Origin: Cyanophora paradoxa CCMP329
Lineage: Eukaryota; Plantae; Glaucophyta
Direction of reading: 5' to 3'
NCBI GenBank assembly: GCA_004431415.1
Contig: QPMI01000395.1
Span: forward strand, 682,001-746,000
DNA length: 64,000 bases
The translations under genes were made by a program, and so were the position numbers. The notes under the pieces are model-generated. The model was not told the origin of the DNA. It searched no databases and saw nothing but the letters and a program-made list of their open reading frames with translations. Positions 4,989 to 43,900 of the stretch are shown one piece after another. Within the stretch, counting starts at the first letter, position 1; every line of letters begins with the position of its first letter.

Positions 4989-5236
4989 TTGTTCACATAG
5001 ATCGACAGCGGTATCGTGCTTCTTATTTCCGCTGTGTATATATACGCACAAGAGTCGTAAGTACAGCGACGTAGAGGGGAGCAGGAACGCAAAAGACGCT
5101 AACGACCGCTAACATTCTGTTCTAAATGCAGAAAAGGGCACATTCTAGTCTTAAACGAGAGCCAGAAGGAGTCGACGAAAGCAGCCTGGCAGACGAAGCT
5201 CAATCTCCAATAGCTGCCGAACTTCTGAACAGCCGA

Positions 5237-8200
5237 TCAGCCGCCGAAGGCCCCGTTGATGCGGAGGCGCTCGAGGGTGAGCTGCGACCCGACGTCCTCG
5301 AGGGCCCCACCCTCCGCAAGGCGCTGGACGGCGCGCGTCTGAGCCAGCGCCGCCCCGTGAGGGAAGCAGGAGGGGCGGGGGCAAAGGAAGAGTAAGAAAC
5401 CGCACCTCGTCGTCAGCGGCGGGGGCGGTCGGCTCGCTGGTCGGCGGCGCCGGGGTGGAGGCGGCCCCGCTGGTGGGGGCGGCGTCGAGGGCAGTGTCGA
5501 GGGTCGCGCGGGCGGCGGCGAGCTCCTCGAGCACGCGGCGGGCCTCCGCCTCGTCCGCCCGCGCCGCCGCGAGGGCCGCCTGCGCCGCCGCCGCCCGCTC
5601 CGCCGCCGACTTGTTGAGGGCGTCGAGCGCGGGGCGCGCCGCCTCCGCCAGCGCCCGCTGCGCCGCCTTGACGACCGCCGGGGACGAGACCGCCGCCGCG
5701 GCCGCCCGCGCGAAGGCGGCGGCCGCCGCGTCGGCGGGGCGGCCGGCCCGAAGCCGGCGGCGGCGAGGGCGGCGCGGTCGACGGAGTAGGCGACGCGCTG
5801 CTTCTCGGCTGCAACAGTTTCGACGACTGGCACCTCCTTGACCTGCGCCGCCCGGGGTCGGAAGCGGTCTCACTGGCGGAGGAAGGGCTGGCTTTGGGGC
5901 CGGGGCTAAGGGCATTGGGTGGGGTGGGTGGGGTGGGTGGGGGGGGGGGGGTGGGGGGGGGGTGGGGGGGGGGTGGGTGGGGGTGGGGGGGGGGGGTGGG
6001 GGACGGGTGGGATCAAGAGCAGCGCCGCGCACCTTCGTCACCGTCCGCTGCTTCACCACCGGCTCCACGCACGGCTCCTGCGGCTGGGGATCAGAAGCGG
6101 CCCGGGCCGGAAGGGGTACAGGGCGGTTCGGGTTCGGCTCGGGGTTCAACTGTTCAGGCGTGGAAAGCGCACCAGCGTGTGCTCGTTGACGTGGCGACGG
6201 CCGACAATTATTCCGAGCAGGCCTGGCACTTCGACTTGTCGAGTTTTTATCTCGTAGAGGCCGCCTTCCGTCGCGTTCCGCCTTCCTGCCACCAGCATAA
6301 CACCCAGCACTGACCACGGCCAGAACGCGTGCTCGTCGTCGTCTCTCCACGTGCGCACGGGCACGTCCTCCATGTACTCCTCTGGCACTGCGAACGCGAG
6401 GGCTCGCCGCGGGCGGAGAAGACACGGCAGGGGCGAGCGCGCACCCTGCTTCTTCACGACACGGGTGCGCGGCTCGTGCTCGACGTACGACTCCTGCACC
6501 TCCACCTCGACCGGCCGGAGCACGGTCTTCTTCTCGGTGACCGTCTCCTTCCACTCGCGCTTCGCCGGCGGTGGGACCGCGCCCCACTGCACCGCCGGGG
6601 ACGCCCCCGCCACCGCCTCCAGCGCCGCGAGGACGGGTCCGGCGCCCAAAGCGGCGAGGGCGGGAGCCGGCACGCCGACAGCGGCGGCGGCGGCGGCGAG
6701 GCGGCCGCGAAGGCGCTCCGCGGACGGTCCGGCGAGCGCCTCCGCCGCCTTCGCGCCGGCCACGCCGGGAACGAGCCGCAGCTCGGCGGCGAGGTACCGC
6801 TCGACCGCCGTGCGCAGCTCTGCCGCCCGCGCCGCCGCCTCCGCCTCCGTTCCCTCCCCACCGCATCCCCCATCCGCCTCCAGAGCAGCGGCGTCGAAGC
6901 GGGCGACGGCCTCAGGCCAGTCGAGTCTATTCCGTGCCGCCGCCCGCGCCGCCGCGTCGCCGCTCGCCAGCGCCGCGCCCGCCGCCAGGACGGCTTGGAC
7001 GCGGTGCGACAGGGCCGCTTCGAAGGGCCCCGCCGCGAGCAGCTCCGGCAGCTCCAGCCCCGCACTCACCGCTGCGCCCCGGCCAGTCAGACGCGCCGGG
7101 GCCGCCGCCAGCGGCGCGGGGGAGGCCGCACCGCGCGAGAAGCTCTCGGCGCACGCGAGCGCTTCCGCAGCAGCGTCCACAGCTCCGGCGCCCTCCTCAG
7201 CGGCAGCCACAGCTCCCGCCAGCTCCGCCTCGGCGCGAACTCCTTGCGGACCTGCGCGGAGTTCGGGTGCGGCTCGGGGTTCAACTGTTCAGGCGTGGAA
7301 AGCGCACCAGCGTGTGCTCGTTGACGTGGCGACGGCCGACAATTATTCCGAGCAGGCCTGGCACTTCGAATTGTCGAGTTTTTATCTCGTAGAGGCCGCC
7401 TTCCGTCGCGTTCCGCCTTCCTGCCACCAGCATAACACCCAGCACTGACCACGGCCAGAACGCGTGCTCGTCGTCGTCTCTCCACGTGCGCACGGGCACG
7501 TCCTCCATGTACTCCTCTGGCACTGCGAACGCGAGGGCTCGCCGCGGGCGGAGAAGACACGGCAGGGGCGAGCGCGCACCCTGCTTCTTCACGACACGGG
7601 TGCGCGGCTCGTGCTCGACGTACGACTCCTGCACCTCCACCTCGACCGGCCGGAGCACGGTCTTCTTCTCGGTGACCGTCTCCTTCCACTCGCGCTTCGC
7701 CGGCGGTGGGACCGCGCCCCACTGCACCGCCGGGGACGCCCCCGCCACCGCCTCCAGCGCCGCGAGGACGGGTCCGGCGCCCAAAGCGGCGAGGGCGGGA
7801 GCCGGCACGCCGACAGCGGCGGCGGCGGCGGCGAGGCGGCCGCGAAGGCGCTCCGCGGACGGTCCGGCGAGCGCCTCCGCCGCCTTCGCGCCGGCCACGC
7901 CGGGAACGAGCCGCAGCTCGGCGGCGAGGTACCGCTCGACCGCCGTGCGCAGCTCTGCCGCCCGCGCCGCCGCCTCCGCCTCCGTTCCCTCCCCACCGCA
8001 TCCCCATCCGCCTCCAGAGCAGCGGCGTCGAAGCGGGCGACGGCCTCAGGCCAGTCGAGTCTATTCCGTGCCGCCGCCCGCGCCGCCGCGTCGCCGCTCG
8101 CCAGCGCCGCGCCCGCCGCCAGGACGGCTTGGACGCGGTGCGACAGGGCCGCTTCGAAGGGCCCCGCCGCGAGCAGCTCCGGCAGCTCCAGCCCCGCACT

Positions 8201-9840: not shown

Positions 9841-10158
9841 TCGAGGACGAATTCGCCGGACAAGGCTGGAGCAGCGGGAATGCTAGCGCAACTGAGACAG
9901 GCGCGATCGAGCTGCATCTTCTGGAGGTCTCTTGACCGCTTTGAATTCAACTGACCTGGTCGAGAGACGCACAGTCAAGCAACGGTTGGGGTACCTGTTA
10001 AGATCAAATCACAGGTCAAGCGACCCAAGTCACTCGTCGAAGCGCAGGCGAGATGGAGCGGTACTCGCAGAGAGGCCGAGACCTCACTCGCTTTCGGTCA
10101 GCCACCCAGCGAAGCCAGCCAGGCCGCGCTCGTCACCGCAAGCGACGCAGCGATATAG
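9841..10158. promoter_or_regulatory. Bidirectional promoter region between A1 and B1
   Basis: ~320 bp between divergent starts. Contains GGGGTACCTGTTAAGATCAAATCACAGGTCAAGCGACC (9988-10025), conserved in all three pairs. Confidence 0.6.
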
Positions 10159-13100
10159 ATGGCCGTCTTCAGCACCCTCATCCCTCCCGCAACGAAGCTG
10201 CGAGCGGCTTCAGCGCGGCTTCAGCAAGCGGCGATGTCGCGCACGTTCGCGGTTCAAAGCGAAGGCGCCTCCCAGCTCAGCGAGAGCTATGCCGCGCTCG
10301 GGACCTGCGCGAAGCACACGGAGGAAGTCCTGAGCGATCTCCTGAAGACTCTCGGTCCGCTTCTTTTCACTCGCAGTTGGCCACGCGATGGCGCTGACCT
10401 TCCGCATGTCTGCCAGAGGAGGCGCTGTTCAAGGTCGTCTTCGTGGGCCGCATCAAGACGGGAAAGAGCACGATCATCAACTACTTCATCGGGCGCCGCC
10501 TGCAGCCGTCGTGCGCCCTCGTTTCGTTCGTCGCCTTTCAGCGGACCTGATCTCGCCCTGGCAGGTCCGTTGAGCCGCAGACGGCGTTTCCCGTGGCGTT
10601 CGTGCACGCTGCGGTGCTACGTCTGCTGGCACTGGACGGGGCGCCATCCTCCGCCACCTTCGAACAGGTCCAGCAGCTGCTCCGCTCGGCGAACGCGGAC
10701 GCCCGCGGCGGGAACGCGCGCGCCGCGTACGCGGAGAGGCGCGTGACGGTGGAGGTCCCGCTGGAGGCGATGCGGGGCCTGCCCGACCTCGGCGGCCGCC
10801 TCGCGCTCATCGACGCGGCCGGCTTCGGCGAGAGCGGCGCCCAGCTGCTGGCGCGGGCGTCGGAGTGGGCGCTGGAGCGGGCGAACTTCGTGATCCACGT
10901 GGCGGACTACACGAAGATGAACGAGGCGGAGGACATCGCCATCCTTCAGGAGCTCCTCCGCAAGCGCCCGTGCCTCTTCCGCCGCGGCGCCGTCCTCGTT
11001 CTCCTGAACAAGGTCCGCGCCGCGCTCTAGAGCCGCCCAAAGTCGAGTTGAACACTCTGCCCCCGCGCAGGCGGACGAGCACAAGACGGACGAGCGGAGC
11101 GTGACGCCCGAGGCCGCGCCGGAGTGGTACCGCGCCCGGCTGCGGGAGGCCGGGGTGCGCTCCTTTGCCGAGGCCGCTAGCTCCGTTCGCCGACGGGCTC
11201 GCGGCAGGTGGAGCTGCCTGCGGGGAGCGTGATCGCCGTGCGGGGGCTGGACGGCCTACGCGCCCGGCTCTACCTGCAGGGCGCGGCCAGCGACGAGGAG
11301 AAGGCCGAGCTCTTCAAGGCAAGGTGGGGCAGAGGATGGCGCGAGAAGACCGACGAACAGCTTCTGGCCGAGGCGCGGGCCGTCCTCGAGCGGGTGCTCC
11401 GATCCGCCCGCCGGCGCCGCCCGTCTCTGACGATGCGCAGAGCGGGATGCCGGCGGCGGAGGGGCGGGTGCGGGCGCTGTACGAGCAGCACGGGCCGCAG
11501 CTGGCGGCCGCGGCAACCGAGGAGCTCCGCGACCGCTTCGCCGCCCTCCAGACCGTGCGCCGTCCGCGCCCACTGCCGCCTCCGCACCGGCAGCGCCCGA
11601 CGCTTTGCGGGCACAGGCGGCCGGGCAGACCGCCGCGGCGCTCGAGAGCGCTAAGGGCGAAGCTGACAGGCGCTTCGCGGCATCAGAGGAGATCCTCCGG
11701 GAGGCAGCCGGCGCGGAGGACGGTGAGCAAAGCAGCCTCTGGCCAAGCGCGGCATCTTCGCTAACCGCCGCGCGCAGCTGCGAAAAGCGGCGCGCGGGTG
11801 CTGGACCTCGAGGCGGCTCCGCTCTTGGCCGCGCTCTGGCGGGAGGAGGGCCCGGCGCTGGCCCGGCTCGAGGCGGCGGCGGCGGCCGCGCTGGCGGTGC
11901 TCTCGGGCTCGGAGGCGGCGCGGGCGGCGGCGCGGCGGGCCCTCGCCGACCCCGCTCTGGTCGCCCGCCTCGACGCGGCGGCCGCCGAGGCGGACGGGCT
12001 CTGCGGGGGCGAGGCGGAGACGCGCGAGGCGGCGGAGCGGCGGCGGGAGGCGCTCTGGGCGGCGGGGCGCGCGTACCTGGCCGCCGAGCTGGAGGCGGCG
12101 GCGGGCCGCGTGGCCGCCGGCCTCGAGGCCCGCCTCGCCGCCCGCTCCGCCGCCCTCGCCGGGCCGCTCGCGGCGCTCGCCGGGCGCGTCGGCGCCCCCG
12201 CGCCCGCGCTCGCCGCCGCCCTCGCGGAGCTCACGGCGGCCGGGTCGGCGTACCGCGCGGCGGCGCGGGCGGGGGCGGAGGCGGCGGGGCGGCTGCTGCC
12301 GGCGGCGGCGCCGGGCGGCGGCATCGTGGAGCGGGTGTGGGAGGAGGCGCGGGCGGTGGAGGACGTGCGGATGGTGCCGCGCGAGTACGAGACGACGGAG
12401 ACGGTCGTCGAGGCGGTGGAGCGCACCCGCACCGTCGAGAAGATCGGCGCGCCCCGCCGCTCGTCGGAATCCTCCCAGGTTTTGCGGCGCTGACGCCTGG
12501 CGCGCAGATCCCTTTGCTGCCAAGAAGATGGTCACCCGCACACGATACGTTCCCGTTCGCTCGAGCGGGGGCGGCGGCGGCGTTGGTGGCGCTGTCGGCG
12601 CTGTCGGCGCGGCTGGCGTCGCTGGAGCTGTCGGGGCGGCGGCCGCTGCCTTAACGAATCCTGTGACTGGCATCGTCGTGGGCGTCGCGAGCCTCGGCAA
12701 GCTCGTGGCTGGTGAACGGGAGAAGGGCTACGATCTCCGCGCGGTGGAGTACCAGGAGGAGGTCGACTGCGTCGAGTACCGGCCCGTCCAGAAGGAGGCG
12801 AGCGTACCCCGTTCCGTCTCCTCCCCCCGCGCCTTCTAAATCTTCCCCAGGAGAAGTACGTCGAGCACGTGCCGAAGGAGAAGACCGTGACAAAGGCGCG
12901 GCCCTGTACCCCTCCCCGGCGCGCGTACCCCTCTCACGGGTACGGCAGGTGCGGGAGGAGCCGGAGCGCTACGAGCGGGTCGTGCACGAGCGCAAGGCGG
13001 CCTACAGCGTTGACCGCGCCGGCCTCGCGCGCGCCGCCGAGGCCCTCGCGGCCTCCGCCCGCTCCGCTGCCCTCCGCGCCCTCGAGGAGGCCGCCGCCGC

Positions 13101-13925: not shown

Positions 13926-16900
13926 CTACGAATCCGTGTCTGCGGCGCCGAGGGCCGCTCGGGCGGCTTCGAGCTCCTCGAGCACGCGGCGGGCCTCCGC
14001 CTCGTCCGCCCGCGCCGCAGCGAGGGCCGCCCGCGCCCCCGCCGCCCGCTCCTTTGCCGCCTTGTTGAGGGCCTCCAGCGCAGGGCGCGCCGCCTCCGCC
14101 AGCGCCCGCTGCGCAGCCTTGACGACCGCCGGGGACGAGACAGCCGCGGCGGCCGCCCGCACGACGGCCGCGGCCGCCTCGTCGGCGGGGCGGCCGGCCC
14201 CGAAGCCGGCGGCGGCGAGGGCGGCGCGGTCGACGGAGTAGGCGACGCGCTGCTTCTCGACGGGCACGTCCTTCACCGTCGGCAACTCCTTCACCTGCCG
14301 AAGAGGCGGGCGTCGAGGGCGATTCCGCTGGATGGAATGGTGTGCCGCGCACCTTCGTTACCGTTCGCTGCTTCTGAACCGGCTCCACGTACGGCTCCTG
14401 CGGCCGGGAATCGAACTTAAGTTGGGGGGGCGGGGAGGATGCGAGCCGGGGTACAGGGCGCACTGTGAACTCCTTTTCGACGTTCCGCACGCGCGTCTCC
14501 TTGCGGATCTCCGTCTGCGCGGGGGGTCGGGCGGGCCTCTCCGCTGCACTGCGAGGGGACACACCTCAGTGTATGGGACGTGGACAGTGTACTTGTCAAT
14601 CTGAATGCCGAGGAACCGCTTCTTGCGCGTCTCCGCTCGGAGCTTCGTAACCTGCACCGGCACATCCACTTCATACTGCTCCGGCTCTGCGCGCGCAGGG
14701 CTCGCAAAGACGCGTTAGACAGGGGCAGGGACCAGCGCGCACCCAGCTTCTTCACGACGCGGGTGCGCGGCTCGTTCTCGACGTACGACTCCTGCTCCTC
14801 ATACGTGGTAGGCTCGAGCACGGTCCTCTGCTCGGTGACTGTCTCTGTCCACTCGCGCTTCGCCGGCGGCGGGACCTCGCCCAACTGCACCGGCGGCGGC
14901 GACCCCGCCGCCGCCTCCAGCGCCGCAAGGACGAGGCCGAGGCCCAGAGCGGAAAGAGCGGGTGCCGGCACGCCGATGGCGGCGGCGTCGTCGGCGAAGC
15001 GCCCGTGAAGGCGCTCCGCGGCCGGCCCGGCCAACGCCTCGGCCACCTTGGTGCCGGCCACGCCGGGGACGAGCCGCAGCTCGGCGGCGAGGTACCGCTC
15101 GACCGCTGCCCTCAGCACCGCCGCCCGCGCCGCCGCCTCCGCCTCCGTCCCTTCCCCGCCGCATCCCCCGTCCGCCTCGAGGGCCGCGGCGTCGAAGCGG
15201 GCGACGGCCTCGGGCCAGTCGAGTCTATTCCGTGCCGCCGCCCGCGCCGCCGCGTCGCCGCTCGCCAGCGCCGCGCCCGCCGCCAGGACGGCTTCCACGC
15301 GATGTGACAGGGCCGCTTCGAAGGGCCCCGCCTCGAGCAGCTCCGGCAGCTCCAGCCCCGCGCTCACGTCTGCGCACCGCCGGTCACGCGCCGTCACCGC
15401 TACCGGCAGGTACGGGGGGAACGCCGTAGCGCGGGGGAGGCCGCACCGCGCTCGAGGCTCTCGGCGCACGCGAGCGCCGCCGCCGCCGCCTCGTCGGCCG
15501 CCGCGCCCTCCGCAGCTGCCTCCGAGGCTCCCGCAAGCTCCGCCTCGGCGGGCTGCGCATCGATCAGCGTGCGCGACGACGCCCACGTGGGGAACGGGGC
15601 ACCCTCGAGATGGCCGCGAGGCCGGCGCGGATCTCGTCGGCGGCGGAGGCCGCGAGCTGCCGTCTCGTGTCGACATAGAGGGCGCGCAGGCGCTCCTCCA
15701 CCGCCGCCAGTCCGCTCTGCGCCGAGTCAGCGGCAAAGAGCGGAGGATGACAGGGGGCTCGCACTTCGTTAAGAACAGCCACCGCCTCAGCCTGCAGGGC
15801 CTCGTCGGTCTGGGTCCGCCAGTCCTCGCCAAATGCATCTTTGAAGAGCTCGGCCTTCTCGGCGTCCGCGGCGCGGCCGAGCTTGTTCAGCCGCGCCCGC
15901 AGCGCCCCCCGCGCGCTTAAGGGCAGGATGCACTCCGGCGGGATTTCCACCTGTGCAACCCTCAGAGACAAATGCGCCTTGGATAGAGACGGCGCATGCG
16001 CACCCCGGCGTGGCACAGCTGGGCGCTCACCCACGCCGGCGCGTCGGCGGGCGTCACGCTGCGCTGTTCGTCGGAGCTGTACGCGTCCACCTGCGGCGCT
16101 CGGTGTTGAGAGAGCTGCAGCGGGCTGGCAGGCGAGGCACGACGGACCTTGTTGAGGAGGACCAGGACGCGGGGCCAGGCCTCGCCGGGGCGGGTCTCGA
16201 AGAGGTGCGGGCGCTGCTGCTTCAGCTGCGCGAGCGCCGCCGTCCCCTCCGCCTCGTTCATCTTCGTGTACTCCATCACGACGATCACGTAGTTCGCGAT
16301 GCGGAGGATGCGGTCCGACGCAGCGCTCAGGTACTCGGCCCCGAACTCGCCCTTGCCCGCCACGTCGAAGAACGAGAAGCGCGTCTCGTTCGCCGGCAGA
16401 CCCTCGAGAAGCTCCAGCGGGGCCTCGACCATCAGGCGCCCTGCGCGCGGGATCGCAAGATCGCTCGAGGATGGAGAGCACAGGGCGGACCGTCGTAGAG
16501 AACGAGGGTGTCGGGATTTGCGCGGGCCGCGTCGTTGATCGCCTCGAGACGCGCGCGGATAGCTTCTGGCCCCTCCACCAGCTCCTCGGGTTGGTCGCTC
16601 GCTCCCGCGATGCGGAGAAGCGGCGTTGTGCGGCCCGGCGCATGGAAGACCTCGACCGGCACCGCCGTCTCAGGCTGCACAGCGCTGCGGGGGGGAATGA
16701 GATAATGTGAGCATGCCGTCTGATCGGAAAGAGAGCTCGTACGCGGGCTGTAGGCGATAACCGAGGAAGGCGTTGATGGTCGTGGACTTGCCGGCCTTGA
16801 AGCGGCCCACGACGGCTACAACGAAGCGCGACTCATCTAGAGAGCGCTTGGTGCTATTGAAGACCAGAACATATTCGCTGGCGGCCTCCGCGAGGGCCGA

Positions 16901-17038
16901 TGCGAGCTGGGCGGCGTCGGGCGTGCGCCGGCGACCCGCACGCCCGGCTGCCTGCGCTGCGGACGTGGATGCATTGATCGCAGCGACGACCGCCTGGCAG
17001 ACGCGGAGGGGGAATTCGAACACCCCGTGAAGCTGCAT
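13926..17038 (-). CDS. Bacterial-dynamin-like GTPase, type A, copy A2
   Basis: FVVAVVGRFKAGKST, FFDVAG, LLNK|VD, PLSARGALRAR. Tip ETRKKRFLGIQIDKYTVHVPYTE. Ends ..AADTDS*. An alternative start lies at 17099. Confidence 0.8.
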
Positions 17039-17359: not shown

Positions 17360-20300
17360 ATGGCCGTCTTCAGCACCCTCATCCCTCCCGCAACGAAGCT
17401 GCGAGCGGCTTCAGCGCGGCTTCAGCAAGCGGCGATGTCGCGCACGTTCGCGGTTCAAAGCGAAGGCGCCTCCCAGCTCAGCGAGAGCTATGCCGCGCTC
17501 GGGACCTGCGCGAAGCACACGGAGGAAGTCCTGAGCGATCTCCTGAAGACTCTCGGTCCGCTTCTTTTCACTCGCAGTTGGCCACGCGATGGCGCTGACC
17601 TTCCGCATGTCTGCCAGAGGAGGCGCTGTTCAAGGTTGTCTTCGTGGGCCGCATGAAGACGGGAAAGAGCACGATCATCAACTACTTCATCGGGCGCCGC
17701 CTGCAGCCGTCGTGCGCCCTCGTTTCGTTTGCCGGCTTTCCACGGACCTGATCTCGCCCTGGCAGGTCCGTTGAGCCGCAGACGGCGTTTCCCGTGGCGT
17801 TCGTGCACGCTGCGGTGCTCCGTCTGCTGGGGCTGGACGGGGCGCCATCTTCCGTCTCCTTCGATCAGGTCCAGCAGCTGCTCCGCTCGGCGAACGCGGC
17901 CGCCCGCGGCGGGAACGCGCGCGCCGCGTATGCGGAGAGGCGCGTGACGGTGGAGGTCCCGCTGGAGGCGATGCGGGGCCTGCCCGACCTCGGCGGCCGC
18001 CTCGCGCTCATCGACGCGGCCGGCTTCGGCGAGAGCGGCGCCCATCTGCTGGCGCGGGCGTCGGAGTGGGCGCTGGAGCGGGCAAACTTCGTGATCCACG
18101 TGGCGGACTACACGAAGATGAACGAGGCGGAGGACATCGCCATCCTGCAGGAGCTCCTCCGCAAGCGCCCGTGCCTCTTCCGCCGCGGCGCCGTCCTCGT
18201 CCTCCTAAACAAGGCCCGTGCCGCGTTGTAGGGCTGCAGACAGCGTCGCTAACGGATCGGTCCCCGCGCAGGCGGACGAGCACAAGACGGACGAGCGGAG
18301 CGTGACGCCGGAGGCCGCGCCGGAGTGGTACCGCGCCCGGCTGCGGGAGGCCGGGGTGCGCTCCTTGTTCGGGGGCCGCTAGCTCTGTCCGCCGACGGGT
18401 TCGCGGCAGGTGGAGCTGGCGGCAGGGAGCGTGATCGCCGTGCGGGGGCTGGACGGACTACGCGCGCGGCTCTACCTGCAGGGCGCGGCCAGCGACGAGG
18501 AGAAGGCCGAGCTCTTCAAGGACGCCTTCGGCCGGGGCTGGCAGGGACAGACGGAAGAGAACCTGCTGGTCGAGGCTCAGGCCGTCCTCGAGAAGGTGCT
18601 CCGATCCGCCCGCCCGCCAGCGCCGCCCGTCTCTGACGCGGCGAAGAGCGGGATGCCGGCGGCGGAGGGGCGGGTGCGGGCGCTGTACGAGCAGCACGGG
18701 CCGCAGCTGGCGGCCGCGGCGACAGAGGAGCTCCGCGACCGACTCGCCGCCCTCCAGATCGTGCGCGCCCGCGCCCACTGCCGCCTCCGCGCCTGCTGCG
18801 CCTGACGCTTTGCGGGCACAGGCGGCCGGGCAGACTGCCGCGGCGCTCGAGAGCGCTAAGGGCGAAGCCGACAGGCGCTTCGCGGCATCAGAGGAGATCC
18901 TCCGGGAGGCAGCAGGCGCGGAGGACGGTGAGCAAAGCAGCCTCTGGCCAAGCGCGGCATCTTCGCTAACCGCCGCGCGCAGCTGCGAAAAGCGGCGCGC
19001 GGGTGCTGGACCTCGAGGCGGCGGCGCTGCTGGCCGCGCTCTGGCGCGAGGAGGGCCCGGCGCTGGCCCGGGTCGAGGCGGCGGCGGCGGCCACGCTGGC
19101 GGTGCTCTCGGGCTCGGAGGCGGCGCGGGCGGCGGCGCGGCGGGCCCTCGCCGACCCCGCTCTGGTCGCCCGCCTCGACGCGGCGGCCGCCGAGGCGGAC
19201 GGGCTCTGCGGGGGCGAGGCGGAGACGCGCGAGGCGGCGGAGCGGCGGCGGGAGGCGCTCTGGGCGGCGGGGCGCGCGTACCTGGCCGCCGAGCTGGAGG
19301 CGGCGGCGGGCCGCGTGGCCGCTGGCCTTGAAGCGCGCCTCGCCGCCCGCTCCGCCGCCCTCGTCGGGTCGCTCGCGGCGCTCGCCGGGCGTGTCGGCGC
19401 CCCCGCGCCCGCGCTCGCCGCCGCCCTCGCGGAGCTCACGGCGGCCGGGTCGGCGTACCGCGCGGCGGCGCGGGCGGGGGCGGAGGCGGCGGGGCGGCTG
19501 CTGCCGGCGGCGGCGCCGGGCGGCGGCATCGTGGAGCGGGCGTGGGAGGAGGCGCGGGGGGTGGAGGACGTGCGGATGGTGCCGCGCGAGTACGAGACGA
19601 CGGAGACGGTCGTCGAGGCGGTGGAGCGCACCCGCACCGTCGAGAAGATCGGTGCGCCCCGCCGGCTGCACGCGGCCGCGCGGCGTTGACGCCCGGCCCG
19701 CAGAGCCCTTCGCGGCGACGAAGATGGTTACCCGCACGCGGCAGGTGCCTGTCCCCGTCGGCGGCGGCGGCGGCGGCGGCGGCGACGGGGACGGCGCTGC
19801 GGGCGCGGCTGCCGCGCTGGGGAATGCGGCGGCCACAGCAGCGGATCCTGTGGTCGGCGGCGTCCTGGCGGGCGCAGGCGCGATCGTCGGCCTCCTGGGA
19901 GGCGGGCGGCGCCAGCAGGGGTACGAGCTTCGCACCGAGGAGTACCAGGAGGAGGTCGAGTCCGTCGAGTATCGGCCTGTCCAGAAAGAGGCGAGCGTAC
20001 CCCCTTCCATCTCCTCCCCCCTGCGCCTTCTGAACCTCCCCCAGGAGAAGTACGTCGAGCGCGTGCCGAAGCAGAAGACCGTGAAAAAGGCGCGGCCCCG
20101 CACCCCTCCCCAGCGCGCGTACCCCTCTCACGGGTACGGCAGGTGCGGGAGGAGCCGGAGCGCTACGAGCGGGTCGTGCACGACCGCAAGGCGGCCTACA
20201 GTGTCGACCGCGCCGGCCTCGCGCGCGCCGCCGAGGCCCTCGCGGCCTCCGCCCGCTCCGCCGCCCTCCGCGCCCTCGAGGAGGCCGCCGCCGCGCCCGC

Positions 20301-23589: not shown

Positions 23590-24602
23590 CGAACTGTCGG
23601 GACAGCTTGCGCGGCTGCGCTCCCCGCACGGAACTCACCCGACTGCCCAGAAGTTTTCGTCGGGAGCACGCACCCTCAAGCTTGTCCCATACATGGTCAG
23701 TTTACTACACAAGTCGCCTTAAGCTTGCGGTCCCCAGGACGCCCCCCGTACGGCTTCGCAAGGTATTTTACTTCGGCCCAGGACGCTTTCAAGGACGTGA
23801 CAATCAGCATGGCTCACCCCGTGTGCTTGGTTTCCGTCGATTTCGACGTCCCTGGGCGTGTGCGCCGTGCCGCGCTTGCGCTTACGCCGACAAGTCGGAC
23901 AAGTCTCCGACAAGACAGGCCTGGGGTACGACAGACAACTGGCGAACAGGTTCATCAGAAGCCTAGGCCTAGGCCTGGCGCCGCGCCGCGGCGGCCGGCG
24001 CCCAGATCTAGAATCGGCCTAGCTTGGCTTGCGCATGCATGCCAGTTGGTTACTAGTACTACTAGGGTAATTAGGCTAACGTTAACGTTGCAATTGGCAT
24101 GCGCGCGCAGGCGCAGCGCCGCCAACTTACAAGTTGGCCATTTTGCAAGCTTTAAGCCTTGAAGGTGCAAGGTGCTCGGCCCGGCGGAGCTCGAGGCGCG
24201 CGGAGCATGATCATGATCTAGATCCGCGAAACAGAACGGACTGCTTACTCGAACTTGAATCATTTGAATAGAATAGAATAGAATCACAACCTACGGGGCC
24301 CGGGGGGATCGCGGCCGCTCGCCCCACCGTAGTCTCTCTAAAAAGGGAACTTCGGAAAATACGTCTTGAAAAATCTGCAGCTGTATGATATCGATAGGGT
24401 CATAACTTAGTGACTCAAAATCGAAAACAGAAGAGAATATCGCGCATTTAATTTGATGATCAGGATCCGGCTCCGATCAGCGCTTCCGAGCACTGGCCTA
24501 GATCAGAGCACTCAATACCGAAAAGATAAGCTCCGAAAAAGATCAGGGCTGCCGAGCACCGTGGCACTGGCCTGGATTAAAGCACGGGCCGAGCGCGTCG
24601 CT

Positions 24603-29732: not shown

Positions 29733-30660
29733 GCGCGTATCCGGCCGCCTCGGCGGCCTCGCCCGGGCGCTCGCTCCGCCGGCCTTGCCGGGCCGCTCGC
29801 GGCGCTCGCCGCGCATCGGCGCCCCCGCGCCCGCGCGCCCTAGGCCTCGCTGCCGCCGTCTCGAGCTCTAGATCTAGATCTGATATCGATCATGAGCTCG
29901 CAGCGGCCGGGGCGGCGTACCGCGCGGCGGCGCGGCGTACCGCGCGGCGGGGGCGAAGGCGGCGGGGCGGCTGTTTCCGGTGGCGGCGCCGGGCGGCGGC
30001 CGCGGCATCGTGGAGCGGGTCTGGGAGGAGGCGCGGGCGGTGGAGGACGTGCGAGTGGTCCCGCGCGAGTTCGAGACGACGGAGACCGTCCTCGAGGCGG
30101 AGCTCGAGGAGCGCACCCGCACCGTCGAGAAGCTCGGTGCGCCCCGGCCCGCCGGCTGAACGCGGGCGCCGGCGCGCTGTGCTGACGCGTGGCGCGCAGA
30201 GCCCTTCGCGGCGACAAAGATGGTCACCCGCACGCGATACGTTCCCGGCCAAGAAGACAGAGCCCGTCCCGGCCCGTCCCGGCCCTCTCACGGGGTTACG
30301 GCAGGTGCGGGAGGAGCCGGAGCGCTACGAGCGGGTCGTGCACGACCGCAAGGCGGCCTACAGCGCCGACCGCGCCGGCCTCGCGCGCGCCGGCGCCGCC
30401 GAGGCCCTCGCGGCCTCCGCCCGCTCCGCCGCCGTCCGCGCCCTCGAGGAGGCCGCCGCCGCCGGGCCGCGCCCGCTGTCACAGTGTCGTCCGCGCGGCG
30501 CACGCGGCGGCGGCGGCGGCGGCGGCGCCGGGGCTGGCCGGGGGCCCTCGCGGCGGCGCGGGCGCGGGTGGCCGGGCCATGGAGGCGGATCCGGACCGTC
30601 GGACGTCGACGGGGCGGCGGGCAGCGCGGGACGCGGACGTGGCTCCTCCGGCGCGTCCCC
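29733..30660 (+). pseudogene. Truncated, degenerate type-B dynamin-like fragment (3' half only, tip exon deleted)
   Basis: Aligns with B1 ~12070-13240 (VERVWEEARAVEDVRVVPREFETTET, VREEPERYERVVHDRKAAYS). No GTPase exons, the tip is missing, and there are many small insertions. Confidence 0.85.
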
Positions 30661-31090: not shown

Positions 31091-34000
31091 CTAGTTCGAG
31101 GGCAAGCTGTCGAGGGCCGCTCGGGCGGCTGCGAGCTCCTCGAGCACGCGGCGGGCCTCCGCCTCGTCCGCCCGCGCCGCAGCGAGAACCGCCTGCGCCG
31201 CCGCCGCCCGCTCCGCCGTCGCCTTGCTGAGGGCCTCGAGCGCGGGGCGCGCGGCCTCCGCCAGCGCCCGCTGCGCCGCCTTCACGACCGCCGGGGACGA
31301 GACAGCCGCGGCGGCCGCCCGCACGACGGCGGCGGCCGCCTCGTCGGCGGGGCGGTCGGCGCCGAAGCCAGAGCTGACGAGGGCGGGGCGGTCGACGGAG
31401 TAGGCGACGCGCTGCTTCTCGACGGGCACATTCTCGAGAGTGGGAACCATCTCGACCTGCCGCGATTCTCGGGGTTGGCGGGTGCAGCGAGCCCAACAGC
31501 TTCACATTGTGCCACACCTTCGGCACCATCCGCTGCTTCTGCACGGGCTCCACGTACGACTCCTGCGGCCGGGGGATCGAAATCGGGGGGGGGGGGGGGG
31601 GGGGGGGGCATGCGAGACGGGGTACGGGGCGCACGGAGCATGCCTCCTTGACAGGAAGCACGCGCACCTCCTTCCGAATTTCCGTCTGCGTGCAGGCCGG
31701 CGTCAGGCGGGGCTCTCTGTTACGCGGTGGAGGGCGGCACCTCGGTGTAGGGCACGTGGACCGTGTACTTGTCGATCTGAATGCCGAGGAACCGCCTTTT
31801 ACGCGTCTCGGGCTTCACTCTCTGGACTTGGACCGGCGCGTCCACCTCGTGCAACTTCGTCACTGCGCGGGGCTCGCGGCGGGCGGCGAGCGATCGCGTC
31901 GTGGGCGCAACGCGCACCTTCCTTCTCCACGGTGCGGGTGCGCACCTCGTGCTCGATGTACGATTCCACCTCCTCCACAATGGTCGGGCGGAGCACCTCC
32001 CTGTGCTCGACCTTCACGTCCGTCCACTGCCGCTTGGCGGGCTCCGGGGCCTCGCCCCACTGCAGTGGCGGCAGCTCCCCCGCCGCCGCCTCCAGCGCCT
32101 CGAGGACGGGACCGGCGTCCAGAGCGGCAAGGGCGGGGGCCGGCTCGCCGACCGTGGCGGCGGCGGCGGCGAGGCGGCGGTGAAGGCCCTCAGCGGCGGG
32201 CCCGGCGAGCGCCTCCGCCACCTTGGAGCCCGCCACGTCGGGGACGAGTCGCCCCAGTTCATCTGTGAAGTAACGCTCGACCGCCGCCCACAGCTCCACC
32301 GCACGCGCCGCCGCCTCTGCCTCCGTCCCTTCGCCGCAGCAGGCTTCATCCGCTTCGAGAACTGCGTCTTCGAAGCGGGCGATGGCCCCGGGCCAGTCGA
32401 GTCTCTTGCGTGCCGCCGCCCGCGCCGCCGCGCTGCCGCTCACCAGCGCCGCAGTGGCGGCGAGAACGACGGCCGCGCGATGTGACAGGGCTGCTTCGAA
32501 GGGCCCCGCCTCGAGCAGCTCCGGTAGCTCCAGACCCGCGATCACCTCTGCGCCCCCGCAGGTCAGACGATCAGCCACCACCGCTGCCGCCGCCGCAGGA
32601 AGGCCGCACCGCGCGAGAGGCCGTCGACGCTAGCCAGGGCCGCCGTCGCCTCTTTAGCTGTCGTCGCGCCCTCCTCGACTGCCTTGGTCGCCCCCGTCAG
32701 CTCCGCCTCGGCAAGCTGCGCTCCGCTCAGCGAGCGGCGCGCCTCGCGAGGGGAGCGGCGGCGTGCCTTGGAGATGGCCGCGAGACCGGCGCGGATCTCG
32801 CCAGCGGCGGAGGCCGCGAGCTGCCGCCTCGTGTCGACGTAGAGGGCGCGCAGCCGCTCCTCCACCGCCGCCAGTCCGCTCTGCGCCGTCTGAGCGACAG
32901 CGGCAGAGAGCGGAGGATGACAGGGGCTCGCACTTCTTTAAGAACAGCCACCGCCTCGGCCTGCAGGGTCTCGACGGTCTGAGTTTTCCAACTCCGGCCG
33001 AAGGCCTCCCTGAACAGCTCGGCCTTCTCGGCGTCCGTGGCGCGGCCGAGCAGGTGGAGCCGTGCTCGAAGCGCTGCAAGAGCGCTGAACGGCAGGACGC
33101 ACGTTGGCGGTATCATCACCTGCGCAAACATCAGAGACGAACGCGCTTCGGGTAGAAACCGCGCATGCGCACCCCGGCCTTGCCAAGCTCCGCGCTCACC
33201 CACGCCGGCGCGTCGGCGGGCTTCACGCTGCGCTGTTCGTCGGGGTTATATGCATCCACCTGCGGCGCTCTGCAGTCAGCGAGGTGCGGCGGGCTGGGAG
33301 GCGAGACACGGCGGACCTTGTTGAGGAGGACCAGAACGCGGGGCGAGTCTCCGGGGCGGGTCTCGAAGAGGTGCGGGCGCTGCTGCTTCAGCTGCGCGAG
33401 CGCCGCCGTCCCCTCCGCCTCGTTCATCTTCGTGTACTCCATCACGACGATCACGTAGTTCGCGATGCGGAGGATGCGGTCCGACGCGGCGCTCAGGTGC
33501 TCGGCCCCGAACTCGCCCTTGCCCGCCGCGTCAAAGAACGAGAAGCGCGTCTCGCTCGACGGCAGGTCCGTGAGTAGCTCCAGCGGGGCCTCGACCGTCA
33601 AGCGCCCTGCGCGCCGAATCGGAAGATCGCTCGAGGGCGGAGTGCAGGGCGCTGACCGTCGAAGAGGGCGAGCGTGTCGTGATTGGCGCGGGCCTCGTCG
33701 TTGATCGCCTCGAGGCGCGCGCGAATACTCTCTGCCCCCTCCACCAGCTCCCCGAGCTGATCACCCGCTCCCGCGATGCGCAGCAACGGTGTCGTGCGGC
33801 CGGGAGTATGAACAACCTCAACGGGCACCGCCGTCTCTGGCTGCGTGGCGCTGCGAGGGGGAATAAGATATTATACGTTGTGTTCGATCGAAAAGAACGC
33901 GCGCACGCGGGCTGCAGGCGTTGACCGAGGAAGGCGTTGAGGGTCGTGGACTTGCCGGCCTTGAAACGACCCATGACGCCCACAACGAATTGCGACTCGT

Positions 34001-37320: not shown

Positions 37321-40300
37321 AGGATGCCGGAGGCGGCGGAGCGGCCGGCGGCGCCCTCGAGGGCGGCGGCGGCCGCGGCGAGCTCCGCGCGGGCCGCCTC
37401 CAGAGCCGCCGCGTCCCGCGCCGCCGCCCCGCTCGCCGCCCCGTCCGCCTCCGCCCGCGCCCGCGCCGCCGCCGCGAGGGCCTCCAGCCCGGTGCCGCCG
37501 CCGCCGCCGCCGCCGCATGCGCCGCGCGGACGACGGCGGGCGCGGCGGCGGCCTCCTCGAGGGCGCGGAGGGCGGCGGAGCGGGCGGAGGCCGCGAGGGC
37601 CTCGGCGGCGCGCGCGAGGCCGGCGCGGTCGACACTGTAGGCCGCCTTGCGGTCGTGCACGACCCGCTCGTAGCGCTCCGGCTCCTCCCGAACCTGCGGT
37701 ATCCCCATGAGAGGGGTACGCGCGCTGGGGTCCTGAGGAGGGGTGCGGGGCCGCACCTTTTTCACGGTCTTCTCCTTCGGCACGCGCTCGACGTACTTCT
37801 CCTGGGAGAGGTTCAGAAGGCGCATGGGGGGAGGAGATGGAAGGGGGTACGCTCGCCTCCTTCTGGACGGGCTGGTACTCGACGGACTCGACCTCCTCCT
37901 GGGACTCCTCCACGTGGAACTCGTATCCCTGCTCTCCGTCGAGAAGGAAAGCTTTTTCAATCTGGAGGCCGACGATCGCCGATTCCGCCCCGCCAGCGCG
38001 CACGTCGCGCCCAGCCGCGCCTCCATCTCCGCGGCCAGGCACCTGCTGCATGCGGGGAACCATCTTCTTCGCAGCAAAGGGCTCTGCGCGCCACGCGTCA
38101 GCGCCGCGCGCCCGCGAGCAGCCGGCGGGGCGCACCGATCTTCTCGACGATGCGGGTGCGCTCCACCGCCTCGAGGACGGTCTCCGTCGTCTCGTACTCG
38201 CGCGGCACCATCCGCACGTCCTCCACCGCCCGCGCCTCCTCCCACGCCCACTCCACGATGTCGCCGCCCGGCGCCGCCGCCGGCAGCAGCCGCCCCGCCG
38301 CCTCCGCCCCCGCCCGCGCCGCCGCGCGGTACGCCGCCCGGCCGCCGTGAGCTCCGCGGGGCGGCGGCGAGCGCGGGCGCGGGGGCGCCGACGCGCCCGG
38401 CGAGCGCCGCGAGCGGCCCGACGAGGGTGGCGGAGCGAGCGGCGAGGCGCGCCTCGAGGCCGGCGGCCACGCGGCCCGCCGCCGCCTCCAGCTCGGCGGC
38501 CAGGTACGCGCGCCCCGCCGCCCAGAGCGCCTCCCGCCGCCGCTCCGCCGCCTCGCGCGTCTCCGCCTCGCCCCCGCAGAGCCCGTCCGCCTCGGCAGCC
38601 GCCGCGTCGAGGCGGGCGACCAGAGCGGGTCGCCGAGGGCCCGCCGCGCCGCCGCCCGCTCCGCCTCCGAGCCCGAGAGCAGCGCCAGCGCGGCCGCCGC
38701 CGCCGCCTCGAGCCGGGCCAGCGCCGGGCCCTCCTCCCGCCAGAGCGCGGCCAAGAGCGGAGCTGCCTCGAGGTCCAGCACCCGCGCGCCGCTTTTCGCA
38801 GCTGCGCGCGGCGGTTAGCGAAGGTGCCGCGCTTGGCCAGAGGCTGCTTTGCTCACCGTCCTCCGCGCCGGCTGCCTCCCGAAGGATCTCCTCCGATGCC
38901 GCAAAACGGCGGTCGGCTTCGCCCTTGGCGCTCTCGAGCGCCGCAGCGGCCTGCCCGGCCGCCTGCGCACGCAAAGCATCAGGCGCTGCCGGCGTGGAGG
39001 CGGCAGTGGGCGCGGGCGGCGCACGGTCTGGAGGGCGGCGAGTCGGTCGCGGAGCTCCTCGGTCGCCGCGGCCGCCAGCTGCGGCCCGTGCTGCTCGTAC
39101 AGCGCCCGCACCCGCCCCTCCGCCGCCGGCATCCCGCTCTGCGCCGCGTCAGAGTCGGCCGGCGCCGCCGGGCGGATCGGAGCACCCGCTCGAGGACGGC
39201 CCGTGCCTGGGCCAGCAGCGCCTCGTCTGTCTGTCCTCGCCAATCCTCACCGAAGGCGTCCTTAAATAGCTCGGCCTTCTCCTCGTCGCTGGCCGCGCCC
39301 TGCAGGTAGAGCCGGGCGCGGAGGCCGTCCAGCCCCCGCACGGCGATCACGCTCCCCGCCGCCAGCTCCACCTGCCGCGAGCCCGTCGGCGGACAGATCT
39401 GACAGCCCCCGAACAAGGAGCGCACCCCGGCCTCCCGCAGCCGGGCGCGGTACCACTCCGGCGCGGCCTCGGGCGTCACGCTCCGCTCGTCCGCCTTGTG
39501 CTCGTCCGCCTGCGCGGAAACCGAGCTGTCAGCGCCGCTGTCTGCAGCGCTAAAACGCAGCACGGACCTTGTTCAGGAGGACGAGGACGGCGCCGCGGCG
39601 GAAGAGGCACGGGCGCTTGCGGAGGAGCTCCTGCAGGATGGCGATGTCCTCCGCCTCGTTCATCTTCGTGTAGTCCGCCACGTGGATCACGAAGTTCGCC
39701 CGCTCCAGCGCCCACTCCGACGCCCGCGCCAGGACATGGGCGCCGCTCTCGCCGATGCCGGCCGCGTCGATGAGCGCGAGGCGGCCGCCGTGGTCGGGCA
39801 GGCCCCGCATCGCCTCCAGCGGGACCTCCACCGTCACGCGCTTCTCCGCGTACGCGGCGCGCGCGTTCCCGCCGCGGGCGGCCGCGTTCGCCGAGCGGAG
39901 CAGCTGCTGGACCTGTTCGAGGGTGACGGAGGATGGTGCCCCGTCCAGCGCCAGCAGACGTAGCATTTCAGCGTGCACGAACGCCACGGGGAACGCCGTC
40001 TGCGGCTCAACGGACCTGCCAGGGCGAGATCAGGTCCGTCGAAAGCTGGTGAACGAAACGAGGGCTCACGACGGCTGCAGGCGGCGCCCGACGAAGTAGT
40101 TGATGATCGTGCTCTTTCCCGTCTTGATGCGGCCCACGAAGACGACCTTGAACAACGCTTCCTCTGGCAGGCAAGCGCAAGGTCAGCGGCATCGCGTGGC
40201 AAACTGCGAGTAAAAGAAGCGGACCAAGAGTCTTCAGGAGGTCGCTCAACACTTCCTCCGTGTGCTTCGCGCGGGTCCCGAGCGCAGCATAGCTCTCGCC

Positions 40301-40960: not shown

Positions 40961-43900
40961 ATGGCTCTGGCTCCCATCGGGCGTGCGGCCGGAGATGCCA
41001 TCACTGCAGCCACGTCCGCAGCGCAGGCGGCCGGGCGTGCGGGTCGTCGGCGCACACCAGACGCAGCCCAGCTCGCATCGGCCCTAGCGGAGGCCGCCAA
41101 CGAGCGCATCCCGGTGTTCAATAGCACCATGCGCTCTCTAGATGAGTCGCGCTTCGTTGTGGCCGTCATGGGCCGCTTCAAGGCCGGCAAGTCCACGACT
41201 CTCAACGCCTCCCTCGGCCAACGCCTGCAGCCCGCGTGCGCGCTTTCTTTCCGATCGAATACAACGTTCATAACATCTTATTCCGCATCGCAGCGCCGTG
41301 CAGCCAGAGACGGCAGTGCCGGTTGAGGTCGTCCATGCGCCGGGCCGCGCAACGCCGCTTCTCCGCATCGCGGCAGCGGGTGGGCAGCCCGAGGAGCTGG
41401 TGGAGGGACCAGAGGCCATCCGCACGCGTCTCGAGGCGATCAACGACAAGGCCCGCGCCAATCACGCCACGCTCGCTCTCTACGACGGTCCACCCTGTGC
41501 GCTCCGCGCTCGAGCGATCTTCCGATCCGGCGCGCAGGGCGCTTGACGGTCGAGGCCCCGCTGGAGCTACTCAATAACCTGCCGGCGAACGAAGCGCGTT
41601 TCTCGTTCTTCGACGTGGCTGGCAAGGGCGAGTTCGGAGCAGGGCACCTGAGCGACGCATCGGACCGCATCCTCCGCATCGCGAACTTCGTGATCGTCGT
41701 GATGGAGTACACGAAGATGAACGAGGCGGAGGGGACGGCGGCGCTCGCGCAGCTGAAGCAGCAGCGCCCGCACCTCTTCGAGGCCCGCCCTGGGGAGGCC
41801 TGGCCCCGCGTCCTAGTCCTCCTCAACAAGGTCCGCCGTGCCTCGGCTCCCAGCCCGCCGCAGCTCTCTCAATACCGAGCGCCGCAGGTGGACGCGTACA
41901 GCTCTGACGACGAGCGCAGCGTCACGCCCGCCGACGCGCCGGCGTGGGTGAGCGCCCAGCTGCGGAAGGCCGGGGTGCGCATGCGCCGTCTCTATCCGAA
42001 GCGCATTCGTCTCTGACGGTTGCGCAGGTGGAAATCCCGCTGGAGTGCATCCTGCCCTTAAGCGCGCGGGGGGCGCTGCGGGCGCGGCTGAACAAGCTCG
42101 GCCGCGCCGCGGACGCCGAGAAGGCCGAGCTCTTCAAAGATGCATTTGGCGAGGACTGGCGGACCCAGACCGACGAGGCCCTGCAGGCTGAGGCGGTGGC
42201 TGTTCTTAACGAAGTGCGAGCCCCCTGTCATCCTCCGCTCTTTGCCGCTGACTCGGCGCAGAGCGGACTGGCGGCGGTGGAGGAGCGCCTTCGCGCCCTC
42301 TACGTCGACACGAAGCGGCAGCTCGCGGCCTCCGCCGCCGACGAGATCCACGCTGGCCTCGCTGCCATCTCCGAGGCGCGACCCCGCTCCTTTCGGGCGT
42401 TGCGGCGCGGTCTGAGCAGAACACAGCGCGCCGAGGCGGAGCTTGCGGGGGCCTCGGAGGCGGTGCGAGCGGGCACGGCGGCCGACGAGTCCGCGGCGGC
42501 AGCGCTCGCGTGCGTTGAGAGCTTCTCGCGTGGTGCGGCCTCCCCGCGCCGTCGGCGGCGCCCGCTGAGCCTCTGACCGGCGGGCGCGCAGCGGCGAGCG
42601 CGGGGCTGGAGCTGCCGGAGCTGCTCGAGGCGGGCCCCTTCGCAGCGGCCCTGTCGCACCGCGTCCAAGCCGTCCTGGCGGCGGGCGCGGCGCTGGCGAG
42701 CGGCGACGCGGCGGCGCGGGCGGCGGCGCGGAAGAGGCTCGACTGGCCCGCCGCCGTCGCCCGCTTCGACGCCGCTGCTCTGGAGGCGGACAAAGAGGCC
42801 GGCGGGGAAGGGACAGAGGCAGAGGCGGCGGCGCGGGCGGCGTTGCTGCGCGCGGCGATCGAGCGGTACCTCGCCGCCGAGCTACGGCTCGTTCCCGGCG
42901 TGGCCGGCTCCAAGGTGGCGGAGGCGCTCGCCGGACCGTCCGCGGAGCGCCTTCGCGGCCGCCTCGCCGCCGCCGCCGCCGCCATCGGCGTGCCGGCCCC
43001 GCCCTCGCCGCTCCGGGCGCCGGACCCGTCCTCGCGGTGCTTGAGGCGGCGGCGGGGTCGCCCCCGGCGGTGCAGTGGGGCGGGGCCCCGCCGCCGGCAA
43101 AGCGCGAGTGGAAGGAGACGGTCACCGAGAAGAAGACCGTGCTCGAGCCCACCCAGTATGAGGAGCAGGAGTGGTACGTCGAGAACGAGAAGCGCACCCG
43201 CGTCGTGAAGAAGCAGGGTGCGCCCTGCGCCCGAGGCTCGCAAACCACTTTCGCCGCCGACGCCAGCTCCCCGCAGTGCCGGAGGAGTACATGAAAGACG
43301 TCGTGGTGCCGGTCACGAAGTACCGGGCCGAGACGCGCAAGGATAAAATTTTCGGCATCCAAGTGAACAAGTACACGGTCCACATCCCCTACACAGAGGT
43401 TCTCAGTCCCGCTTTCCTCCCCCCCCCCCCCCCCCCTCCCCGCACCCTCCCCCCCCCTCCCACCCCCTCCCCCCCCTCCCCCCCCCCCCCCCCCGACATG
43501 CGCCGCAGAATGAGACCCGCAAGGAGAAGAGCGTGCGGTACGTCGAGAAGGAGTTTACAGTGCGCCCTGTACCCCTTCTGGTCCGGACCGCTTTTGATCG
43601 CCGTTCGCAGGAGCCGTACGTGGAAGCAGTGCAGAAGCAGCGGACGGTGACAAAGGTTCGCAGCGCTGTTCTCGCCGACAAGACCGCTTCTGACCTCCGG
43701 GCCGGGCCGCTGCAGGTGAAGGATGTGCCGACGGTGAAGGACGTGCCCGTCGAGAAGCAGCGCGTCGCCTACTCCGTCGACCGCGCCGCCCTCGCCGCCG
43801 CCGGCTTCGGGCCGGCCGCCCCGCCAACGCGGCCGCCGCCGTCGTCGTGCGGGCGGCCGCGGCGGCTGTCTCGTCCCCGGCAGTCGTGAAGGCGGCGCAG

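Follow-up and report, generated by a model that had tools for sequence, protein, structure and literature searches.

The dynamin-like GTPase encoded by gene A2 of Cyanophora paradoxa contains a segment of 132 residues that is probably an antiparallel beta-hairpin, with about 60-65 residues in each arm, standing at the tip of the protein's trunk. This is argued for by the topology of its AlphaFold model, by the balanced arms of its paralogs and by cross-strand covariation in the wider family. As judged from sequence comparison, the segment is an elongated form of a short hairpin common to the CrfC/RdcA-related clade of dynamins, and not a new insertion. The favoured explanation, considered rather probable, is that this long two-stranded hairpin, lengthened from the short form of the clade, carries a membrane-contact element at the trunk tip.

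Structure and expression of gene A2

The window, i.e. the whole stretch of 64,000 nucleotides analysed, is eukaryotic DNA with a GC content of ~70% and introns of ~50-75 nt, and contains an array of dynamin-like genes of two types, labelled A1-A4 and B1-B4. The features of A2 are the following.

13926..17038, minus strand: gene A2, a bacterial-type dynamin-like GTPase of 829 aa in 12 exons (EukProt tig00020510_g9935.t1, here P0002), with Dynamin_N and CrfC profile matches and RNA contigs
16781..16807, minus strand: G1 motif (P-loop)
16346..16366, minus strand: G3 motif (DxxG)
16159-16148, minus strand: beginning of the G4 motif (NKxD), finished by the next exon
14616..14863, minus strand: N-terminal arm of the hairpin, aa 595-658, broken by the intron 14742-14687; AlphaFold strands 595-609 and 619-655
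14604..14615, minus strand: hydrophobic turn F659-L-G-I662, the exact midpoint of the insert, with a basic patch RKKR before it; a turn in both AlphaFold models
14238..14603, minus strand: C-terminal arm, aa 663-726, split over four exons; AlphaFold strands 667-703 and 713-727
14229..14240, minus strand: base anchor Y-S-V-D, corresponding to the Y/H-x-V/I-D that follows the short hairpin in bacterial, sponge and green-algal relatives
14687..14742, minus strand: intron in the N-terminal arm, skipped in three runs guessed to be RNA and retained in a DNA run
14515..14564, minus strand: intron directly after the tip exon, likewise skipped in three runs guessed to be RNA and retained in a DNA run

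The spliced model of A2 is identical in sequence to the EukProt protein, and the motifs G1, G3 and G4 are all intact. The peptide quoted for A2 in an earlier note on this DNA is encoded by five exons at 14863-14229 of the minus strand. The insert proper extends from A595 to Y726 (132 aa, 14863-14238, minus strand), the base anchor A595 having been placed by eye to within 4 residues, at a point where an AlphaFold strand also begins. Four GT..AG introns split it (14742-14687, 14564-14515, 14463-14398 and 14352-14295), and the two middle exons of the C-terminal arm (14514-14464 and 14397-14353) are short and of phase 0/0. Contigs from the RNA-type runs join the tip exon to the adjoining arm exons, and two of them extend by 153 letters, the sum of the following exons (51+45+57). 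Hence the insert is not spliced out, and both arms and the tip are present in the mature transcript.

These RNA joints and the identical annotated protein exclude an artefact of reading frame or intron placement behind the insert. An organelle transit peptide was excluded by eye, because the distance of G1 from the start is similar to that in bacterial relatives. Models joined during this work (B1, B2 and the second half of A1) entered in-script calculations only, the searches and folds having been run on exons or database proteins.

Evidence for a two-stranded hairpin

The residues V/E/K/R/T/P/Y make up 77% of the A2 insert and 32% of the preceding trunk, while Ala and Leu together account for 6% and 45% respectively, which confirms the composition originally described. 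The arms about the turn measure 65.5/65.5 residues in A2, A3 and A4 alike. The description of similar arms around a central hydrophobic turn is therefore accurate for these A copies, but the B copies have a tip of 34-50 aa with no tight turn.

A comparable symmetry is observed among relatives. The hydrophobic tip, taken as the most hydrophobic 5-mer, falls at 0.4-0.6 of the segment in 68% of 106 relatives, against 21% in shuffles (maximum 35% among 1000 shuffles). Arms defined by motif stand at 1:1 from 11.5/12.5 to 27.5/27.5 residues, those of Cyanophora measuring 59/56, 65.5/65.5 and 72/69, and arm lengths are correlated across 59 rows with Cys tips (r = 0.51, p = 4e-5). For this comparison the tip motif was fixed per clade, as automatic tip picking leads to misleading arm correlations; in a cyanobacterial subset the arms differ by a constant of about 7, for which the placing of the anchor is probably responsible. 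Counting from the base in 136 rows, charges on one arm tend to be answered by opposite charges on the other at registers 0, +2 and -2 (z = 3.2, 4.9 and 4.5, with relatedness among rows only partly removed), and no anticorrelation is seen at odd registers. Such a pattern is what residues directly or diagonally opposite each other on the same face of two antiparallel strands would give.

The AlphaFold model of P0002 shows the dynamin core with confidence (mean pLDDT 81.9), with values of 80-95 outside the insert. Every ordered residue of the insert is modelled as strand, 595-609 mirroring 713-727 and 619-655 mirroring 667-703 about G661, with irregular stretches at 610-618 and 704-712 that may be a kink. 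The check for disorder or helix suggested in the earlier note has thus returned strand, at pLDDT values that are only 36-67 within the insert, from an input alignment that put the short hairpins of relatives on the C-terminal arm only and was in this respect skewed against a hairpin outcome. The tip hairpin is also present in a single-sequence AlphaFold model of the A4 insert, at a pLDDT under 50. Applied to the arms of single Cyanophora sequences, tests by pair potential, dynamic programming and periodicity gave no significant result (z -0.4 to 2.0), and the register is therefore carried over from the family and from AlphaFold. A simple pairing score peaks at register +5 in the three A copies only, and the best ESM Atlas feature for the insert, at 0.81, has a chance-level score.

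An extended strand covers 3.3-3.4 Å per residue. The 65 residues of each arm would therefore reach at most 21-22 nm if straight, and less if coiled or kinked, so that the reach of about 20 nm first proposed is best read as an upper bound for a straight ribbon; the ~20 residues per arm of a typical relative would correspond to 6-7 nm. The antiparallel hairpin of ~60 residues per strand that was proposed alongside it agrees with the predicted topology, the balance of the arms and the covariation in the family.

Position on the dynamin fold and family membership

In the AlphaFold model the G domain is followed by helical neck and trunk bundles, in agreement with its matches to BDLP-like dynamins: IniA, BDLP, SynDLP, Cj-DLP and the mitofusin MFN1 are all recovered (Foldseek E 2.5e-10 to 1e-7, Z 18-23), and the first Atlas row is RdcA. 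The motifs G1-G4 of the Dynamin_N GTPase domain are intact, PF00350 being found on P0001-P0003 and P0005. In the model the chain leaves the trunk after its N-terminal helices, forms the hairpin with its hydrophobic tip and comes back into the C-terminal helices, and the trunk tip is the lipid-binding site in solved dynamin-like proteins (DLPs), including BDLP and Cj-DLP2 (PMC6104087). The hairpin is predicted to stand at the paddle position named in the earlier note, in a topological sense and not by residue alignment, because the family profile aligns to BDLP only up to residue 502.

The CrfC/RdcA profile (NCBIfam PRK09866) is the best family match for the relatives and for all Cyanophora copies but one. 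The two-armed tip segment, centred hydrophobic tip and Y/H-x-V/I-D anchor that served as the working definition of the wider CrfC/RdcA-related clade are all present. P0002 scores 46.6 bits against an equivalog cut-off of 1146, and the Cyanophora rows branch outside the enterobacterial RdcA subclade. The LeoA/LeoBC anti-phage dynamins (PADLOC) give no full-length match, LeoBC covering residues 14-91 only (E 2.8e-7). Mitofusins and Fzo have a transmembrane helical hairpin directly at the trunk tip, whereas the A copies have a 4-residue turn and the B copies bear an apolar segment on 60-residue arms.

Six Cyanophora inserts gave no IMCp or articulin repeat match in Pfam at E<=1, so that the likeness to articulins and alveolins drawn in the earlier note is one of composition. 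An origin from alveolin, articulin or YTV repeats has no profile support, YTV giving only a 10-residue match below the cut-off; self-similarity within the inserts has p values of 0.02-0.74 against shuffles. A viral library search returned generic giant-virus dynamins only. The A2 family is a BDLP-like dynamin in the wider CrfC/RdcA-related clade, and is neither an RdcA equivalog nor a mitofusin, a Leo system or an alveolin. No solved structure from this clade, nor any showing the hairpin, was found in the copy of the PDB searched.

The short form of the hairpin in relatives

An exhaustive search with the GTPase part identified 890 relatives, with representatives in cyanobacteria, enterobacteria, Saprospiraceae, firmicutes, the sponge Ephydatia and the green alga Micractinium. 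Nearly all have a shorter charged segment at the same place, rich in V/T/Y and with a hydrophobic middle, before the Y/H-x-V/I-D anchor. In a set of 106 proteins it is 23-63 aa long and in another set, of 86 ORFs, 21-69 aa, with a median of 44 in each, and that of E. coli RdcA has 42 aa with an amphipathic, Trp-containing tip. Lengths of 116-174 aa are found only in Cyanophora, the longest among ~190 relatives being 63-69 aa. Among targets between 0.55 and 1.75 times as long as the query, a word search with the insert had three Cyanophora proteins as its only matches. The suggestion that the insert is unique to Cyanophora is rejected for the element itself and upheld for its length. Similarly, the architecture is less foreign to dynamins than was first thought, since the clade has the same hairpin at about one third of the length, and the objection raised in the earlier note, that known DLP families might already have it, applies in part. 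No description of the hairpin, short or long, was found in the literature searched, most subscription journals lying outside its scope.

In a FastTree phylogeny rooted at the midpoint, the nine Cyanophora rows form a group of their own (support 99) beside a sponge-containing group (support 89), a placement that is uncertain. As the nine rows are one group and all have the long form, the elongation is taken to have happened once in the Cyanophora lineage.

The relatives vary in other respects. In many of the bacterial ones (P0012, P0018, P0053; L007-L031) the hairpin ends in a Gly-Trp/Leu/Phe-Cys or Cys-Cys tip, for which lipidation, metal binding or disulfide pairing are conceivable. Clostridium nigeriense (L026) has a Gly-zipper tip like the Cyanophora B tips on short arms, with a second dynamin-like ORF adjacent, and the bacterial relative P0026 is followed by a 282-aa gene. 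The loci L085:4551-20030 and L002:3097-11989 are intronless dynamin-like arrays in alternating orientation on gene-poor Mb contigs, a Death domain being encoded between the genes of one of them; Ephydatia muelleri falls in the same clade, and they are possibly an undescribed sponge expansion. Relatives fused to TIR, SAVED-CHAT and PNP domains (including P0017, P0022, P0028 and P0029), as well as the locus L086:291-5743, in which two dynamin genes are followed by a patatin gene, are candidate defence systems.

Variation among copies in the array

The insert is found in A2, A3, A4, B1, B2 and B4. The earlier statement that every intact A and B copy has it stands for these, but A1 has a different, longer tip and is rearranged, and the B3 fragment is tipless.

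31400..32038, minus strand: A3 hairpin insert, 132 aa, F-L-G-I tip
43097..43772, plus strand: A4 hairpin insert, 132 aa, I-F-G-I tip (protein P0001)
12323..13005, plus strand: B1 hairpin insert, 172 aa, arms 60/62, with a 50-aa Gly/Ala/Val tip at about 12564-12713 and three GC..AG introns
19528..20199, plus strand: B2 hairpin insert, 171 aa, arms 60/62, with a 49-aa Gly/Ala tip
37637..38259, minus strand: B4 hairpin insert, 151 aa, arms 57/60, with a 34-aa divergent tip
30007..30361, plus strand: B3 fragment, N-terminal arm fused to the end of the C-terminal arm, tip deleted
5786..6565, minus strand: A1 second-half hairpin insert, with a different long tip of two hydrophobic stretches and the 17-aa C-arm exon lost
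7250..7700 (start approximate), minus strand: A1 truncated first hairpin copy, stopping at the junction of an internal ~1.1 kb duplication (P0003)

The length first given, ~120-150 aa, fits the A copies but is too short for the B inserts, which have 151-172 aa and end in a Gly/Ala/Val-rich tip of 34-50 aa; in B1 the edges of RNA contigs coincide with the borders of the tip exon. Paralogs on other contigs have inserts of 116, 142 and 174 aa with tips centred or nearly so, such that Cyanophora inserts range overall from 116 to 174 aa and their arms from 56 to 72 residues. At three independent lengths (116, 132 and 142 aa) the tip lies within 2 residues of the centre. The most divergent 150-nt bin in the comparison of copies is that of the B tips, at 61-67% identity versus 79-82% in the neighbouring bins and 85-100% in the rest. 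The A tips are not uniformly hypervariable, A2 and A3 being 94% identical there.

Several copies show further irregularities. In A1 (window 5200-9900, minus strand) the ~1.1 kb internal duplication covers the trunk and part of the hairpin. Its tip, unlike that of other A copies, is a loop with an N-A-T sequon between the two hydrophobic stretches, possibly membrane-crossing, and the 17-aa exon has been removed cleanly from its second hairpin copy. Frameshifts in GC-rich runs are found in the trunks of A4 (about 42996, plus strand) and B4 (about 38600 and 38360, minus strand), where the annotated models P0001 and P0005 are distorted; they reflect either pseudogenisation or long-read error. GC donors occur in five of the six hairpin introns of B1 and B2 (12447-12948 and 19991-20142, plus strand), and all A2 introns have GT.

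Elsewhere on the minus strand of the window, repeated ORFs adjoin GTPase genes at 21400-22600 and 34200-35000, and an intron-rich gene at 24450-28700 has subtilase-like peptidase motifs and a Pro/Ser-rich stalk (by eye). Retrotransposon-like ORFs occupy 50600-64000, with a reverse transcriptase at 52598-54535, an integrase-like ORF at 51032-52129 and a protease-like one near 56000 (by eye). One of the repeated ORFs, the copy upstream of A3, accounts for a weak PIN_11 match (E 1.8e-4) seen in P0005, a fused model.

Proposed mechanism and alternatives

Under the favoured explanation, both arms would have lengthened together in Cyanophora to 56-72 residues, and the tip would be a swappable module at the far end of the arm, distant from the GTPase. 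The basic residues and Phe-Leu-Gly-Ile turn of the A tip would suit electrostatic, shallow binding to a membrane, and the apolar, Gly/Ala-rich hairpin of 34-50 aa at the B tip might insert more deeply, the tip of B4 being less hydrophobic. GTP-driven dimerisation of G domains, together with hetero-assembly of A and B as in bacterial DLP pairs, would then form a coat or tether. The stalk would set the distance from this coat to the bilayer, allowing the tips to bridge a gap or a crowded layer in front of the membrane, by analogy with GBP1, whose extended arm passes through O-antigen and matches it in length.

The same hairpin might instead end in a loop recognising proteins or glycans, the long arm acting as a sensor stalk, comparable to loop L4 of Mx or to partner binding by RdcA. 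The B tips are swapped and highly divergent while their arms stay 80-91% identical, RdcA acts through protein partners and the B4 tip is not very hydrophobic, all of which would suit such a loop. Nevertheless, this is considered unlikely: family-wide, the tip is the most interface-seeking stretch, whether aromatic, Gly/Cys or amphipathic, those of B1, B2 and P0007 are long apolar Gly/Ala segments, and lipid is bound by the trunk tip in BDLP and Cj-DLP2.

Quite unlikely is intermolecular pairing of the arms, of A with B or in strand-swapped dimers, on the model predicted for alveolin heterodimers; this would give filaments or a cortical mesh in place of a single-chain needle. The A and B arms are similar in length (65 and 60), their genes lie in A/B pairs, and a ribbon of only two strands leaves both its edges free; AlphaFold models of alveolin repeats show them joining partners in beta-ribbons (PMC12465100), and Cyanophora possesses alveoli (PMC6704402). 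Against this, the two arms of any one chain match in length, charges covary across the arms of individual sequences throughout the family, and no alveolin profile matches.

Equally doubtful is the view of the arms as a flexible, largely disordered tether that zips only near its base or tip or on binding, its length having drifted in a repeat-prone family. Low pLDDT, a high content of charge and proline, non-significant single-sequence pairing scores and the rearranged or frameshifted state of several copies are consistent with it, but such a tether need not keep its arms equal, as seen in the centred tips at 116, 132 and 142 aa, and richness in Val/Thr/Tyr/Ile favours strand. Insertion of the whole hairpin into the membrane and its oligomerisation to a beta-barrel pore, like those of pore-forming toxins or gasdermins, is highly improbable, for although pores of this kind insert by means of long beta-hairpins and the context is of a defence type, the arms are about one third charged and lack period-2 hydrophobic alternation, only the tip being apolar.

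Returning to the membrane-contacting hairpin, and taking its structure as given, defence against invaders has about an even chance of being the setting. This is the likeliest setting because the B tips are most divergent, the tandem array is churning and relatives are fused to TIR, SAVED-CHAT and PNP domains, and also because four paralogs of the sponge-containing group lie in alternating orientation on one gene-poor, eukaryote-like contig and P0005 has its weak PIN match. A housekeeping tether role, for example at the Cyanophora alveoli, is also conceivable. A bolder proposal, offered tentatively and thought somewhat improbable as a whole, is that the CrfC/RdcA-related branch, found in bacteria, sponges, green algae and glaucophytes, presents its membrane or target contact on a beta-hairpin, with hairpin length as a ruler and the tip as a swappable module. 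In Cyanophora this would have produced a needle of ~20 nm in expanding A/B pairs of immune GTPases, which would coat the membranes of invaders or break through them and some of which would adjoin PIN nucleases or be joined to them.

The element at the stalk tip, be it a PH domain, a paddle, transmembrane helices or loop L4, is the usual basis for classifying proteins of the dynamin family. A beta-hairpin stalk, if true, would be a further class of tip, and natural arm lengths of ~12 to 70 residues would offer a ready series for how reach sets tethering distance. Should the defence reading be true, one and the same family of innate-immunity GTPases would have expanded in glaucophytes and in sponges.

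Comparison with known systems

The closest known likeness is to E. coli RdcA (CrfC, YjdA), which aligns end to end to the relatives' profile (E 1e-99) and has a two-armed, hydrophobic-tipped segment at the same place with the same C-terminal anchor. By contrast, the Cyanophora insert is three times longer, its tip is a tight turn or Gly-rich where that of RdcA is amphipathic and Trp-rich, and its genes contain introns and stand in tandem A/B pairs. RdcA is reported to be soluble and to move to the membrane to bind DgcE (PMC6510439, PMC13463826), and a 2026 paper describes it as having no known membrane-binding domain. The model proposed here would predict a membrane- or partner-contact site in RdcA, a feature absent from present descriptions of the protein.

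Nostoc BDLP1, Campylobacter DLP1/DLP2, mycobacterial IniA, SynDLP and the mitofusins share the G domain, neck and trunk fold, and a lipid-binding element at the trunk tip is likewise predicted here. The heterotypic A/B gene pairs resemble Cj-DLP1/2. The tips of these proteins differ in being short paddles or helices directly on the trunk, and Cj-DLP attains a reach of 40-45 nm via a flexible tetramer, not a beta-stalk. The Mx proteins, which are immune dynamins, are compared in their workings only: loop L4 at their stalk tip is a variable element that determines specificity. L4 is a short, disordered loop, and Mx belongs to the classical dynamin branch, unlike the BDLP-like A2 family.

Human GBP1, a GTPase of the dynamin superfamily, has a long arm that carries its membrane anchor through the 10-13 nm O-antigen layer (PMC11746146). 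In GBP1 the arm is a farnesylated helix at the C-terminus, which swings outwards, whereas the Cyanophora arm is predicted to be an internal beta-hairpin with a peptide tip, and the likeness is again in how the two would work, with no homology in the arm. Alveolins, articulins and the YTV repeats of planctomycetes resemble the insert in being rich in V/E/K/R/T/P/Y and predicted to form beta-ribbons; they differ in that the Cyanophora arms appear to derive from the DLP's own tip hairpin.
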